Source: Thecamonas trahens ATCC 50062
Lineage: Eukaryota > Protista > Apusomonadida
NCBI RefSeq assembly: GCF_000142905.1
Contig: NW_013657667.1
Location: 68,801 to 132,800 of the forward strand
Reading direction: 5' to 3'
Length of the DNA: 64,000 bases
In this document: positions 3,600 to 10,033 of the stretch, piece after piece
Layout of the letters: each line of letters opens with the position of its first letter
Numbering within the stretch: position 1 is the stretch's first letter
Notes under the pieces: generated by a model
Told to the model about the DNA's origin: nothing
Seen by the model: only the letters and a program-made list of their open reading frames with translations
Databases searched by the model: none
Translations under genes and position numbers: made by a program

Positions 3600-5009
3600 C
3601 TACAAGTAGCCCACCTCTCGCGACTGATGCAAAAGCTCGTCCCGGAATCGCGGATGTGCGATGGCGACAAGGGCCTGGACCCGCTCGGCAACGCTTTTGC
3701 CGCGGAGGGCGGCGACGCCATACTCGGTCACCACAGTGTCGATGTCGTTGCGCGAGACCGAGACCTTGGCGCCACGCTGGAGCTCAAAGGCAATCTTCGA
3801 GACATGCGAGCCGTCGGCGAGCGCGGCCGATGAGCGCATGGCGATGATGCCGCGCCCGCCGCGCGACATCTGCGCGCCGATGTGTGTCTCGGCGGCGCCG
3901 CCGACGCCTGACAGCTCACGGTGACCGACGCTCTCCGAGCAGACCTGCCCGGTGACATCGATCTCGACTGCGGTGTTGATCGACCGCATGAGGTGCTGCT
4001 TGGCGATGACGTACGGGTCGTTGACCCACGAGCCGGCGCGAAAGGCCACAACCGGGTTGTGGTGCAGAAAGTGGTAGAGCTCGGCCGTGCCGAGCGCAAA
4101 CGAGGCGGTCATGACTCCGCGCTCCGACGTCTTGTGTTTTCCAGTGATGACGCCTGCCTCGTACAGCTCGCGCATCGAGTCGTTCATCATCTCGGTGTGA
4201 ACGCCAAGATCGCGCTTGTTCCGCAGCAGTGTGGCAATAGCATTGGGAATGCCGCCGATGCCGAGCTGAATGGTAGCCCCGTCGGGCACCAGGTCGACCA
4301 CGTACTCGGCGATCCGGGTGTCGATAGCATCGGCCTTGGCTGCCGGAATGGTGATCGGCTTCCGCTCCGAGGTCACGAACATGTTGACGTCGCGGGTGTG
4401 GACCACCGTCCCCCCAGTAGTGAAAGGAATGTGCGGGTTGATCTCGAGTACCACCACCTTGGCCATGTCCAGCGCCTCCGGCTCGTACACCGCCGCTGGC
4501 CCGAGAGAGACAAACCCACGCTCATCCGGCAGCGAGCATGTGCCCCAGAACACATCGGGCTTATCCATATTGCGTGTCCACTGCGAGAGATGCTGCGGGA
4601 TGTAGTGCACCAGATCGCGGCCATGCAGCTTGCGCGTGGCTGGCGTGAGGAACATGACCTCCACCTTGAGCTTGCCCACCAGATCCTCGTCGACAAAGCA
4701 CGGATACGCCTCGGACGGGTTGGCGCACTGGATCCGGGTCCCGTGCCATCCGTTGGCCCGTGCCGCCTCGTGGACATGTGAGAAAAAGCCATGCGGCTCA
4801 CACGCTGCCATTGCCGTCACCACATGCTGCGGCTTGCCCAGGGCGTCGAGCGCCTCCTCTGGCGTCGTCATCTTGCTCGCCACGTCTGCCGGCATCTGCT
4901 CCAGCGCCTGTTTCGATCCCAGCGCAGGAGGCGCCCGCGCATACGGATTGTAGTGGCGGAATACATGCCCAAGGCCAGTCGTAACGCGTGATCTTGTCCA
5001 TCGAAGCAT
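3600..5009 (-). CDS. Acetyl-CoA hydrolase/transferase family (4-hydroxybutyrate CoA-transferase / ASCT-like), probable mitochondrial presequence
   Basis: Motifs TIQLGIGGIPNA, DLGVHTEM, SINTAVEIDVTGQV, SGVGG, VVTEYGVA and IAHPRFR. The N-terminus is Arg/Thr-rich and lacks acidic residues. Confidence 0.92.
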   Translation of the reverse strand: MLRWTRSRVTTGLGHVFRHYNPYARAPPALGSKQALEQMPADVASKMTTPEEALDALGKPQHVVTAMAACEPHGFFSHVHEAARANGWHGTRIQCANPSEAYPCFVDEDLVGKLKVEVMFLTPATRKLHGRDLVHYIPQHLSQWTRNMDKPDVFWGTCSLPDERGFVSLGPAAVYEPEALDMAKVVVLEINPHIPFTTGGTVVHTRDVNMFVTSERKPITIPAAKADAIDTRIAEYVVDLVPDGATIQLGIGGIPNAIATLLRNKRDLGVHTEMMNDSMRELYEAGVITGKHKTSERGVMTASFALGTAELYHFLHHNPVVAFRAGSWVNDPYVIAKQHLMRSINTAVEIDVTGQVCSESVGHRELSGVGGAAETHIGAQMSRGGRGIIAMRSSAALADGSHVSKIAFELQRGAKVSVSRNDIDTVVTEYGVAALRGKSVAERVQALVAIAHPRFRDELLHQSREVGYL

Positions 5010-5622: not shown

Positions 5623-8600
5623 ATGTCGCATGGCTCGGGCCGACACCGGGTGTACGCCACAGGCACCCAAGACCGATACACATCGGATAAGACTCCAGCA
5701 AGCTCTCCGACTGGAAAAAAGCTTCTTTCCTACATCGCTGTACGTTTCTTGCTCGTCTAGCTCCTCTACATCCCCCTTCACCGCCCATGCAACCCTCGGC
5801 TCTGACCCGCCGGGATGGATGGCGTCCAGGCACCGAGGCAGGCGATGGTGATGACGATGGCCATGGCCTTGGCGATGACGATGGTATTGATACGCACAAC
5901 TCACACACAGCATCGGACATGATCTGACATGGCGGAATGTACACGGGTGATGGACGGGGGACAGGAGAATGTGATCGGGGCAAATGCGCGGTTTGCCACA
6001 GCGTTCGGGACGCGGAGCTTGGTCTACGCAGACTACACGGCGTCCGGGCGGAGTCTGGCCTTTATTGAGGACTACATCAGATCGCACGTCCTCCCGCTCT
6101 ACGGCAACTCGCACTCGTCCAACTCGGCGACGTCGATGCAGAGCACGCTGTTCTTGCACGAGGCCCGTGAGATGATTCTCAAGGCCGTCAACGGCAACCG
6201 CGACACTGATGTGGCCCTCTTCACCGGCCCGGGCTCCACATCCGCCATCCACAAGATGGTCTCCGCCCTCGGCCTTGTGGCCCCGCTCGAATCGAGCACC
6301 AGCATTGGCAACGATGACGGTGATGCCCAGGCTGTTGTCTTTGTCTCGCTCCTCGACCACCACTCCAACATCCTCCCGTGGCGCGAGTCGAGCGCGTCAG
6401 TCGTGACCATCGGCGTGAACGAGGCCGGCGAGCTCGACATGGCCCAGTTGGCGGAAGAGCTGCGTGCACATGCAGCTGCGGACCGGTTGCTCATCGGCTC
6501 CTTCCCGGCGGCATCCAACGTGACAGGGCGACTGGTCGACACCGAGGCGGTGACCAAGCTCCTTCACGCCCACGGGGCACTCGCGTTCTGGGACTACGCT
6601 ACCGCTGCGCCGTACGCCGACATCGACATGAACCCAATCTCGGCCGCCGCAGACACCTTCAAGGACGCTATCTTTATCTCGAGCCACAAGTTTGTGGGTG
6701 GGCCATCGGCACCAGGCATCCTCGTCGCCAAGCAGGCGCTTTTCGACAAGCTCCCGCGGTCGTGCGCGCCGGGCGGTGGGACTGTCTTCTGGGTCACCGC
6801 CGATGACCACGCATACCTCGACGACATCGAGTACCGCGAGGAGGGCGGGACGCCCGACATTGTCGGCGCCATCCGCGCAGGCCTGGCCTTCCAGCTCAAG
6901 TCGGCCGTCGGCGGTGAGCTCATTGCCAGCCGCGAGTCCGAGCTTGTTGCCCAAGCCGTTGCTGTCCTCGGCGCCGAGCCGAACGTCACCCTCCTTGGCG
7001 AGAGCCCCCACCACGAAGAGCACCACCTCGCTCTCTTCTCGCTCCTCATCGCTGTCCCGGGTCTGCCGACCGAGACGCCGATGTTCCTGCACTACAACTT
7101 TGTCACCGTCCTACTCAACGATCTGTTTGGGATCCAGGTTCGCGGCGGATGCGTGTGCGCCGGCCCGCTCGGCGCGCATCTTGTCGGCCTCACTCTCGAC
7201 GAGATCAAGGCCTACGTGGTGGCCATGGAGGAGGACAACGAGTTTGAAGTCCTCAAGCCAGGCTTCACCCGGTTCAACCTCCCGTACTTTGCCTCGCCTG
7301 ACGAGGTCGGCTACATCCTCGACGCCCTGGTCTTTGTTGCCCGCCACGGCCACGCCTTCCTCCCGCTCTACAAGTTCATTGGTCACACCGCCGAGTGGAT
7401 CCACGTCGGCAAGGCGCGCGCCTTCCAGCGGACCTGGTTGCAGGCCATCTCGTACAGCTCTGGCGCCATGGCCTACCCAGACTCACCGGCCTCGCAGCCG
7501 CCGGCCAGCACCGAGCTCGCCGCCCTCCGCGCCTCGTACATGGCCGAAGCCCACTCACTGCGGGAGCAGCTCGAGCGCAAGCCTCCGGCAGTCGCCGATC
7601 AGTCTGCGCTCTTCACCACCCATGGCACTGACGCCATCCGGTGGTTCCTTCTCCCGTACGAAGCCGCCACCTTGCTCCGAGGCGAGCCTCTACCGGCGCT
7701 CCCGCCACATCGGGTCCGCCCGCGGACCTACATGGGCGACTCTCGCGAGGCCAAAAAGGCGCCTGAGGATGCCATCGCCAACTCGGCTGCCGCCGACATT
7801 GCTGCCGAGATGATGCTCGCCATGGATGGCGCTGATTGGGAGGCCGACGAGGTGGCCCAGCTCCCGCCGTGTCCGGCACGAACGCCGGCTACGGCACTCG
7901 AGGCCAAGCTGGCGTCGGCCACCGTCCGCAAGCCGCCGCGCAAGCTCATGAACGCCGTCACCAAGGCCATCCGCATGTTTGGCATGATTCGAGAGGGCGA
8001 CCGTATCCTCGTTGGTGTTTCAGGCGGCAAGGACTCGCTCACCATGCTGCACACGCTCCTTGCACTCCAGCGGCGGTGGCCGGTCAAGTACGAGATCGGC
8101 GCCGTGACCGTCGACCCGCAGACTGAGGCCTACGATCCATCGGTCCTCATTCCGTACATGGCCGCGCTCGGCGTGCCGTACTTTTACGAGAAGGAGGATC
8201 TCATCGAGCAAGCCAAGACCAACCAGGACGGCGGGGCGGTGACCTCGATCTGCTCGTGGTGCTCGCGCATGAAGCGCGGTATGATCTACACAGCCATGCG
8301 CCGCGAGGGCTACAACGTCCTCGCCTTTGGCCAGCACCTCGACGACTTTGCCGAGTCGTTCATCATGTCTGCCCTCTTCAACGGAAAGCTCAACACGATG
8401 AAGGCTCACTACACCGTCGACGCCGGCGACTTGCGCGTCATCCGGCCCATGGCCTTTGCCCGCGAGTCGGCCCTCCGCGACTTTGCCTACGCCTCCGGCC
8501 TCCCGGTCGTCTCCGAAACTGCCCGGGCTGCTTCGACGCTCCCATGGAACGCTACCGCATCAAGCAGGTTCTTGCCGCCCAGGAAGCCATCCACCCGCAC

Positions 8601-8675
8601 GTCTTCTCCAATCTCAAGCGCGCACTCATCCCGCTCATGGGCGCAGACGCTGACACCATTGCCGCCACCAGCTAA
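5623..8675 (+). CDS. ttcA: Fusion of cysteine desulfurase-like (aminotransferase V) and TtcA-like tRNA thiolase (PP-loop ATPase). Exon1 5623..5739, intron 5740..5964; one-base frameshift at about 8516-8518
   Basis: N-half has YADYTASG, SSHKFVGG and RGGCVCAGP. C-half has VSGGKDS, CSWCSRMKRG, GQHLDDFAESF and VIRP. The conserved NCPGCF...ERYRIKQVL tail continues in the frame of ORF 8256..8675. Confidence 0.88.
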
Positions 8676-10033
8676 ACAAACAGTAGCGACGCAGAGTGCA
8701 GCCGCAACGACGCATGCAGCTCGGCTAGATTCGACGGTGAGTACGGCGCCGGCGAAAGGCTTTCGCGCACGACCTCGGTCTGCGGAGCGCGGAAGAGCGG
8801 CAGCGGCGTCCATGGCGCCGGCGAGGTCACATGCTCGAGCTCACGCCGAGGCTCGTCTAGTGCAGGCCCCGCTCTGACCGCAGGCTCGAGCTCGTTGACA
8901 GCGAGCTCCGGCGACGGAATCGGTTTGGCGGGCGCTGGCGACGGAAACGGCGGCGCTCGTGGGAGGCGAGTCGCCACGGGGAGCCTCGTGCGCGTCCGCC
9001 GCGGCGTTTGTGTTGCCGCAGATCGTGTCGTGGACAAAGGTGATCGGGTTGCAAGTCGGGCTGCGGGAGCAGCGACCGGAGTGGCCTGAATTGCCACAGC
9101 ATGGCGCGGCGGCGCCTTGCTGGCTTGCGGTGGCGCCGATGGCGACTGCGACCGCACCCGCACCCGCCGCGCTCGGGCCCGCGATGCTGCCGCGTACTTG
9201 GCCCGGGCAGTCGCTCGTGATCGGGCATGCGCCTTGCGACGGGCGGCTCGATCGGCGTGGCTCTCAAACGGCGACGCAACCGGACGGAGACAGCCGCTAC
9301 AGTGCGGCGACCGTCCGTGGTGCTCTGGACAGGAAATGCCATCGGCAACCGCTACAAAGTGGTCCGGATCGTGCATCCACACAATCGGAGGATCACAGCT
9401 GGATGCCGCCGGTGCAGGCGACCGTGTCGGCGATCGTGATGCCTGTAGCTGCGGGCTGTAGTACGACGCAGCGAGCATGAGCGAATCATGCGCGACGTGT
9501 CCGTGATCGTCGCCAGCTCTGTTCTCCTTGCCAGACGAGACCACCACCTGAGCCAAGACTCCAGCCTCCGCCGCGGCCTGCCGCACAGCGATCAGCGGCT
9601 TGTTGGCTCGATGCATCCGACCACCACCCACCGGCGACCGATGCTGCGGCTGGTGCCGGGCACGAGACCGATGGATCTGAGCCGCGTCCAAGCGGACTCT
9701 TGCGCGGGCCAGCATGGCCTCGGCCTCTCTACTTGCGACCGCCGCCGGATGCTCAACCCCATGCTCATGCCCAGTCCCATGCGGTTGATCATCATCTTCA
9801 TCAGAACCTTGGTCATCGGTCCCACTTCGGTCCGCCCGATGCCGCCAAGTCCGCCACGCCCGCGCCAGGCACCGCGAGCGGCGGCGCCAGTAGGCGAGAC
9901 CGGCTGCGTCTGCCACGGCCTTGCGGGTCCGCCAGCGGGTAAAGGCCTCGGCCAGAGTCCTCTGTACACGTGCTACACGCGCTGCTTCCCATGCAGGGAA
10001 CAGTGCTCGAGTCACCGCTGTCGGGCCCTCCAT
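8672..10033 (-). CDS. Hypothetical basic, Pro/Arg-rich protein with Sfi1-like W-repeats near the N-terminus
   Basis: 453-aa ATG-initiated ORF. LAEAFTRWR and LARAWRTWR resemble centrin-binding Sfi1 repeats. Confidence 0.55.
   Translation of the reverse strand: MEGPTAVTRALFPAWEAARVARVQRTLAEAFTRWRTRKAVADAAGLAYWRRRSRCLARAWRTWRHRADRSGTDDQGSDEDDDQPHGTGHEHGVEHPAAVASREAEAMLARARVRLDAAQIHRSRARHQPQHRSPVGGGRMHRANKPLIAVRQAAAEAGVLAQVVVSSGKENRAGDDHGHVAHDSLMLAASYYSPQLQASRSPTRSPAPAASSCDPPIVWMHDPDHFVAVADGISCPEHHGRSPHCSGCLRPVASPFESHADRAARRKAHARSRATARAKYAAASRARARRVRVRSQSPSAPPQASKAPPRHAVAIQATPVAAPAARLATRSPLSTTRSAATQTPRRTRTRLPVATRLPRAPPFPSPAPAKPIPSPELAVNELEPAVRAGPALDEPRRELEHVTSPAPWTPLPLFRAPQTEVVRESLSPAPYSPSNLAELHASLRLHSASLLFV

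Follow-up and report, generated by a model that had tools for sequence, protein, structure and literature searches.

Two described systems come close to the gene considered here, which occupies positions 5623 to 8675 on the plus strand of a 64,000-nucleotide stretch of Thecamonas trahens ATCC 50062 DNA (the window; C13:68801-132800 of a 28.7-Mb assembly) and encodes a cysteine desulfurase joined to a TtcA-type domain. The first is Escherichia coli TtcA (tRNA cytosine(32) 2-sulfurtransferase, b1344), whose oxygen-sensitive [4Fe-4S] cluster is bound by three cysteines and no more (122, 125, and 222) and requires IscS and IscU for assembly. In the assay, the enzyme takes sulfur from the cysteine/IscS system in a reaction that requires ATP, and the sulfur is proposed to pass from a persulfide to the cluster's free iron site (Bouvier et al., PMC4081106). 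The second was reported in a September 2026 preprint that mapped 2-thiocytidine at position 32 (s2C32) in Aplysia tRNA-Lys(UUU), the nucleoside being identified as 2-thiocytidine (s2C) by its mass and isotope pattern. A blastp search of the Aplysia genome starting from E. coli TtcA yielded the candidate enzyme, a 1,177-residue “IscS-TtcA” fusion of Aplysia californica (LOC101861551), and homologues in other molluscs and beyond are mentioned; the preprint contains neither genetics nor enzymology (bioRxiv 10.64898/2026.09.27.754811).

The hypothesis that such a fusion makes s2C is already published as a proposal, and the Thecamonas copy is a member of this recently described family. In the literature that we searched, we found no further paper connecting a eukaryotic TtcA fusion with s2C. 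The initial annotation of the gene, made by a model from the DNA letters and their open reading frames, had proposed the same direct sulfur relay to an RNA cytidine, a reading that the present analysis supports but that is accordingly not new; its statement that s2C32 is not an accepted eukaryotic modification is now contested by the Aplysia mapping (bioRxiv 10.64898/2026.09.27.754811).

A SufS-like desulfurase joined to a TtcA-like domain

The gene encodes one protein with an N-terminal SufS-type cysteine desulfurase domain, dependent on pyridoxal 5'-phosphate (PLP), and a C-terminal TtcA-type PP-loop domain. An uninterrupted open reading frame (ORF; 5929 to 8517, plus strand) spans both with no stop codon between them, and Pfam places Aminotran_5 at ORF residues 32 to 418 (E = 1.5e-34) and ATP_bind_3 at residues 693 to 858 (E = 3.6e-12). 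The protein is about 940 residues long and is the Thecamonas member, by orthology, of a fusion family that is widespread in eukaryotes. All of the residues required of a desulfurase and of a [4Fe-4S] TtcA are encoded in the DNA, the CPGC motif lying beyond a frame break that is discussed below (Table 1). The fusion claimed in the initial annotation is therefore real, given the single open frame, the Pfam and NCBIfam matches, and the two-domain structure of all 120 best relatives, and the motifs that it named (the PLP lysine, RGGCVC, SGGKDS, CSWC, and CPGC) all lie where it had put them. It had also anticipated that similar fusions would already be annotated: NCBI holds this gene as P0001, a 922-residue “selenocysteine lyase” that is 100% identical to the main open frame, and the database labels of relatives read TtcA or cysteine desulfurase.

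The best NCBIfam model of the N-terminal part is SufS (TIGR01979, 5.8e-35). Its score of 121 bits is below the cut-off of 475, as is the CsdA score of 58 bits below a cut-off of 494, and by these scores the domain is a distant branch of the SufS-like group. We aligned 20 diverse members of the fusion family to obtain a profile and a measure of conservation, and this profile matched SufS structures in the PDB at 5e-40. An AlphaFold2 model of a complete relative (P0002, 58% identical; mean predicted local distance difference test score [pLDDT], 76) likewise matched SufS structures in a Foldseek search of the PDB, with a target template modeling score of ∼0.74. Because the profile alignment and the structural model both point to SufS, we assign the domain to the type II desulfurases rather than to an IscS-like group. 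It resembles SufS and CsdA in fold (class V aminotransferase, fold-type I), PLP lysine, EHHSN motif, and R-x-G-x-x-C-A-x-P active-site loop; EHHSNLLPW of the fusion aligns with SufS EHHANIVPW. A search of the PDB with 120 residues around the RGGCVC loop gave no match, and the loop alignment was obtained with the family profile, in which RgGCaCaGP aligns column by column with SufS RAGHHCAQP. Since C410 (7156 to 7158) falls on the SufS active-site cysteine, it is the predicted persulfide-forming catalytic residue. The fusion differs from SufS in having CxC for HHC, the two histidines being replaced by G and C/V, and in carrying an extension of ∼125 residues. The preprint described the N-terminal domain as IscS-like and did not locate its catalytic cysteine, whereas here the domain aligns with SufS and C410 takes the active-site position.

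The ∼125 residues that follow the desulfurase fold appear, from conservation and from the structural model, to be a conserved structured extension and no mere linker. The equivalent region of P0002 is predicted to be ordered, with helices at residues 491 to 545 at a pLDDT of 85 to 93, and P0002 residues 554 to 595, which match the linker that follows, are poorly conserved with a pLDDT of <50. The preprint treats the whole interdomain region as linker, whereas ∼125 of those residues are here conserved and predicted to be structured. The short linker of the Thecamonas protein accounts for its smaller size relative to the Aplysia fusion (∼940 versus 1,177 residues).

A stand-alone paralogue of the desulfurase with its extension, 597 residues long, is encoded on the other strand at a distance of 4.4 kb (C13:68536-70329; L085:766-2559, minus strand), reaching into the window at positions 1 to 1529. 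Its identity to the fused module is 59% in the core and 49% for the extension; it carries RGGCACAGP and terminates directly behind the RWF..P motif. A gene for a 469-residue acetyl-CoA hydrolase/transferase lies between this paralogue and the fusion (3600 to 5009, minus strand; AcetylCoA_hyd_C, 1.6e-54).

For the C-terminal part, the best NCBIfam model is TtcA (NF007972, 2e-52, residues 660 to 861). The window piece scores 178 bits and complete fusions 198 to 206, short of the equivalog cut-off of 272, and other models score far lower on the fusions (TilS, ≤64 bits; TtuA, ≤57; NcsA, ≤27); TtcA is the best model by >100 bits for the fusions and for their nearest bacterial relatives. We regard the domain, on these profile scores, as a TtcA-like sister subfamily rather than a certified equivalog. 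Its identity to E. coli TtcA is 35% over ∼200 to 220 residues. The two have SGGKDS, a central CxxC, and a C-terminal CxxC in common, and each of the three essential [4Fe-4S] ligands has a counterpart. The third E. coli ligand is the second cysteine of CNLC (Cys222 in the paper [PMC4081106], residue 213 in the RefSeq translation), and the fusion has NCPxCF where E. coli TtcA has PCNLCG. E. coli TtcA stands alone and is supplied by separate IscS and IscU, whereas the Thecamonas domain is fused to a desulfurase.

Our searches of the PDB returned no TtcA structure; TtuA and NcsA are the best profile matches of the C-terminal domain there (1e-13 to 1e-10). Ctu1/Ncs6/NcsA and TtuA are likewise members of the PP-loop superfamily, and their three-cysteine [4Fe-4S] chemistry resembles that proposed for the fusion. 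Unlike the fusion domain, they carry zinc-ribbon CxxC pairs. Their sulfur comes from Urm1- or TtuB-type thiocarboxylates. A Ctu1/Ncs6 identity of the C-terminal domain was rejected: NcsA gives 21 bits on the window protein, the two groups are separated in the tree described below, and Thecamonas has its own Ctu1/NcsA-type gene (L002; NcsA, 190 bits), which carries zn-ribbon_14. A further Thecamonas PP-loop protein of 356 residues (L001:1414-2484, plus strand; C13 at ∼292 kb, outside the window) has the TilS N-terminal domain as its best model, at 92 bits slightly below the cut-off of 93.6, and may be a lysidine synthase for organellar tRNA-Ile.

Exon 1 and intron 1 of the NCBI model occupy the 5' end (5623 to 5964), with an in-frame ATG at 5929 as an alternative start. 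“LLSYI” immediately before ENVIG at the exon 1/exon 2 junction matches the family pattern L..YI..N.IG. Exon 1 and intron 1 are plausible, with splice sites of the canonical kind, but the similarity of exon 1 to the N termini of relatives is weak (z ≤ 3.5, in 2 of 11 comparisons). The initial annotation had called the gene intron containing, which is plausible for positions 5740 to 5964, the only plausible intron of the gene, but fails at the 3' end, where a supposed intron is a one-nucleotide frame break. The fusion stop codon overlaps (8672 to 8675) the end of a long open frame on the minus strand (8672 to 10033), and the two would be convergent, abutting genes.

Table 1. Features assigned to the fusion gene, in window coordinates
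Feature	Position	Strand	Basis or remark
Putative exon 1, MSHGS...LLSYIA	5623-5739	+	39 codons; translation equals the P0001 N terminus
Putative intron 1	5740-5964	+	225 nt, GT..AG; donor GTACGT, acceptor GACAG/GAGAAT
Type II (SufS/CsdA-like) PLP cysteine desulfurase fold	6022-7353	+	Aminotran_5, SufS profile match, Foldseek
PLP-binding lysine K254 in SSHKF	6688-6690	+	H253 and K254 invariant in the 20 members; aligns with SufS sgHK
C408-V-C410 in RGGCVCAGP (RGGCVC, 7141-7158)	7150-7158	+	R405, G407, C408, C410, A411, and G412 invariant
Conserved extension of the desulfurase module (HGxxFLP.Y, W490, R501/W503, RWF..P.EA, PF.P)	7354-7725	+	Invariant or near-invariant residues throughout
Variable linker, probably disordered, ∼60 residues	7726-7905	+	Unalignable across the family; length highly variable
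TtcA-like PP-loop domain, main-frame part	7906-8517	+	NF007972; 35% identical to E. coli TtcA
PP-loop SGGKDS, predicted ATP binding and adenylation	8020-8037	+	S698-S703 invariant; aligns with E. coli TtcA SGGKDS
CSWC, first two predicted [4Fe-4S] ligands	8251-8262	+	C775 and C778 invariant; align with E. coli TtcA C122 and C125
Frame break	8515-8519	+	Main-frame codon gaa (8515-8517) and continuing-frame codon aac (8517-8519) share base 8517; A-run
CPGC, predicted third [4Fe-4S] ligand	8520-8531	+	In P0002, aligns with E. coli TtcA CNLC
Last 52 codons and stop of the TtcA-like domain, NCPGCFDAPMERYRIKQVLAAQE...	8517-8675	+	Shifted frame; tblastn, 45-67% identity

Distribution and ancestry of the fusion

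Both Pfam domains occur in one protein in all 120 of the best matches to the Thecamonas sequence, each at E < 1e-197, and this is the architecture (Aminotran_5 plus ATP_bind_3) for which the initial annotation had suggested a search across eukaryotes. All but two of the 120 are 41 to 61% identical over 58 to 100% of the query. Chance is excluded as the origin of the match because full-length two-domain relatives reach E values as low as 5.5e-297. The carriers among these best matches include protists (oomycetes, labyrinthulids, Chrysoparadoxa, a haptophyte, and Percolomonas) and animals (sponges, Trichoplax, cnidarians, echinoderms, hemichordates, amphioxus, molluscs, insects, and horseshoe crab); no fungus, plant, or vertebrate is among them. 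The mollusc members from Littorina, Babylonia, Mya, and Nucella are 43 to 45% identical to the window protein over the whole length. With the Aplysia fusion, as the preprint describes it, the Thecamonas protein shares the two-domain architecture, the PLP lysine, SGGKDS, and the C...CSxC...CPxC cysteine pattern.

We placed the TtcA-like domains in a maximum-likelihood tree (61 rows, LG+C20+F+G4). Thecamonas Ctu1 and the TilS-like protein fall apart from all TtcA-like sequences (support, 98/97), and the fusion domains go with the latter, in line with the initial annotation, which had called the domain TtcA type and had named a grouping with Ctu1/Ncs6 as the contrary outcome. E. coli-type TtcA forms one clade (98/95). 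All eukaryotic fusion TtcA domains form another (90/99), which also includes two short database entries, a haptophyte fragment and an entry from a 1.2-kb contig. Within the fusion clade, the Metazoa group together (100/99), as do two apusomonad-like sequences (100/99) and the stramenopiles. Because the eukaryotic domains form one clade, the phylogeny argues that the fusion arose once.

The nearest bacterial matches to the TtcA domain alone are stand-alone proteins of ∼250 residues that are 58 to 62% identical to it and score 197 to 241 bits on NF007972. The window subfamily thus spans 178 to 241 bits, versus 304 to 478 for E. coli-type TtcA. The hosts of the stand-alone proteins are sulfur-oxidizing Gamma- and Betaproteobacteria, and NCBI names these proteins only “ATP-binding protein.” Carriers among the loci that we compared (L004 to L083) include Thiothrix, Thiomicrospira/Thiomicrorhabdus, Acidithiobacillus, Chromatiales, Ectothiorhodospira, Beggiatoa-like bacteria, Sulfuriferula, and Thiobacillus. 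This short type, as in Acidihalobacter ferrooxydans (P0198), Thiothrix, Thiomicrorhabdus, and Sulfuriferula, has the same NCPACF motif as the fusion and is nearest to it in the tree but, unlike the window protein, is unfused. Across 81 sampled Gammaproteobacteria, 39 have E. coli-type TtcA (304 to 478 bits) and 23 the short type (199 to 237 bits), with none having both (Fisher P = 5e-9, uncorrected for phylogeny). Because the two were never found together in the sampled genomes, the short type probably does the same job as E. coli-type TtcA.

A bacterial operon precursor of the fusion was also sought. No SufS-like gene was detected near the 80 closest bacterial TtcA-like loci (tblastn with the desulfurase module, ≤6 kb on each side), and no such precursor was seen around them.

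A proposed sulfur relay and competing explanations

We consider it likely that the fusion is a desulfurase feeding a TtcA-like thiolase, with 2-thiocytidine as the product, most probably at tRNA C32. The SufS-type PLP module would move sulfur from L-cysteine onto C410 as a persulfide, and the structured extension of ∼125 residues and the flexible linker of ∼60 residues would join the two modules. The TtcA-like module would hold a [4Fe-4S] cluster through only three cysteines, those of CSWC and one of CPGC, while the PP-loop SGGKDS would use ATP to activate a tRNA cytidine, most likely C32, by adenylation at C2. Sulfur from the fused desulfurase could then enter at the cluster's free iron site and be handed to the activated base, yielding 2-thiocytidine. 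We infer the substrate, the position, and the direct intramolecular transfer from the residues and relatives described above.

Type II desulfurases normally require a SufE- or SufU-type acceptor. A six-frame SufE-model search, in which SufU- and IscU-type acceptors were not sought, detected no SufE partner in the 28.7-Mb Thecamonas genome, unlike the situation in the SufS/CsdA systems, and the fused TtcA domain is a candidate for the sulfur acceptor. Other class V enzymes are encoded elsewhere in the genome, including a strong Nfs1-like match, and by its similarity this desulfurase appears to cover general sulfur needs.

Several points weigh against s2C32 synthesis by the fusion. To our knowledge, assay data exist neither for the fusion family nor for the bacterial short-type TtcA-like proteins, and Thecamonas tRNA has never been analyzed for s2C. 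The fusions and the bacterial short type lie below the TtcA equivalog cut-off (178 to 241 versus 272 bits), and identity to E. coli TtcA is just 35%. The usual acceptor of a type II desulfurase is not evident, as judged by a search for SufE and not for SufU- or IscU-type proteins. The assembled Thecamonas sequence is frame broken ahead of the third cluster ligand, and this copy could be inactive. Finally, the Aplysia link is a co-occurrence in a preprint that is not peer reviewed (bioRxiv 10.64898/2026.09.27.754811).

The strongest alternative, itself unlikely although compatible with s2C32 synthesis, is that the desulfurase serves chiefly to assemble or repair the oxygen-labile [4Fe-4S] cluster of the TtcA domain to which it is fused and is not the RNA sulfur donor. 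The E. coli TtcA cluster is oxygen sensitive and needs IscS and IscU (PMC4081106), and a dedicated sulfur source would benefit a cytosolic Fe-S enzyme of an aerobe. Yet the substrate sulfur of E. coli TtcA in vitro comes from cysteine/IscS, with the persulfide-to-free-iron route proposed for it (PMC4081106), and repair and donation share a chemistry that sequence alone does not separate.

Somewhat less probable is thiolation of a target other than cytosolic tRNA C32, such as another position or base, another RNA class, an organellar tRNA, or a small-molecule pyrimidine. The TtcA-domain subfamily is uncharacterized and below the equivalog cut-off, it sits on a branch separate from the E. coli-type clade, and the three-cysteine-cluster PP-loop thiolases NcsA and TtuA, which are among its PDB matches, act on U34 and U54. 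Against another target, no other model comes near the TtcA match, 2-thiouridine at position 34 is already provided for in Thecamonas by Ctu1, and the short and E. coli types exclude each other in the sampled genomes, which is the pattern expected of proteins with the same job. Furthermore, s2C32 is present in an animal whose genome yields the fusion as its match to E. coli TtcA (bioRxiv 10.64898/2026.09.27.754811).

The 3' end raises the possibility that the Thecamonas copy is a recent pseudogene in which a real 1-nucleotide deletion at 8517 has removed the third cluster ligand. The CPGC motif and the last 52 codons sit in a frame other than that of the main ORF; the assembly reads tccgaaactgc at the break, and staying in frame as every relative does requires one extra base. 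With tblastn, five of five relatives follow the main frame up to ∼8544 to 8574 and then match their last ∼45 residues in the shifted frame (8514 to 8651), and this stretch is 45 to 67% identical to their C-terminal ends. P0002 reads GLPVVSENCPGCF without interruption across the break site, and GLPVVSENCPGCFAAPMERYRIK is its continuous single-frame reading over the equivalent region. The NCBI model instead removes a second “intron” of 59 nucleotides with GT..AG ends (8506 to 8564, plus strand), with the result that P0001 passes from ...YASGLP directly to QVLAAQ... and is without VVSENCPGCFDAPMERYRIK. We rejected this intron as an annotation artifact, since it deletes the most conserved motif of the domain (NCPxCFxxPxER is near invariant across the fusion family) and since relatives read through it in the shifted frame. 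By these alignments, the discontinuity at 8517 is a 1-nucleotide frame break, with an intron excluded.

Homopolymer runs are a typical place for base-calling error. Beyond the break the shifted frame stays open and conserved, and the break falls within a homopolymer; for these reasons it is most probably an assembly error in the A-run. The missing base and an NCBI model that is feasible only by skipping CPGC fit a pseudogene as well, but the 52 stop-free codons with their conservation, the intact remainder of the 2.9-kb gene with all catalytic residues present, and the position of the break in the run make a pseudogene improbable.

We give very little weight to the idea that the N-terminal domain is a selenocysteine lyase and that the enzyme installs selenium instead of sulfur; selenium, which the initial annotation had named as an alternative, finds no specific support. 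E. coli SufS/CsdB, which is among the PDB matches, also has selenocysteine lyase activity, and the NCBI name points the same way; that name, though, is inherited from CsdB homology, the SclA model scores 32 bits versus 121 for SufS, and we know of no 2-selenocytidine pathway. The Aplysia nucleoside, moreover, is s2C by mass and isotope pattern (bioRxiv 10.64898/2026.09.27.754811). Two adjacent genes or an assembly chimera, for which we found no support, can be dismissed almost entirely, given the lack of a stop codon between the domains (where the initial annotation had allowed for two separate genes) and the presence of both domains in one protein in the 120 best matches from many independent genomes and transcriptomes.

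Meaning for the family and for eukaryotic tRNA thiolation

A broader reading, to which we give slightly less than an even chance, is that the fusion is an ancient eukaryotic invention that arose in a single event, when a TtcA of proteobacterial type was joined to a SufS-like desulfurase with the structured extension. Vertical descent would then have carried it into apusomonads, animals, stramenopiles, haptophytes, and heteroloboseans, and it would make s2C32 in the cytosol as a self-contained enzyme, with no need of Nfs1, Urm1, or a SufE-type carrier.

For the family, the catalytic cysteine missed by the preprint becomes assignable, as C410, the second cysteine of RGGCxCAGP, and the “linker” of the preprint contains what appears to be a conserved structured module, present also in the stand-alone paralogue. 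In the public gene model for Thecamonas, the 3' end is wrong: it is without the Fe-S ligand motif CPGC and needs correction. If standard model organisms truly lack the fusion, this would explain why s2C was long thought to be absent from eukaryotes. Should s2C32 be the product of the fusion, an anticodon-loop modification and a private sulfur relay that textbooks assign to bacteria and archaea only would be present in many protists and invertebrates, and the apusomonad copy and the monophyly of the eukaryotic domains would push the origin of this relay deep into eukaryote history.

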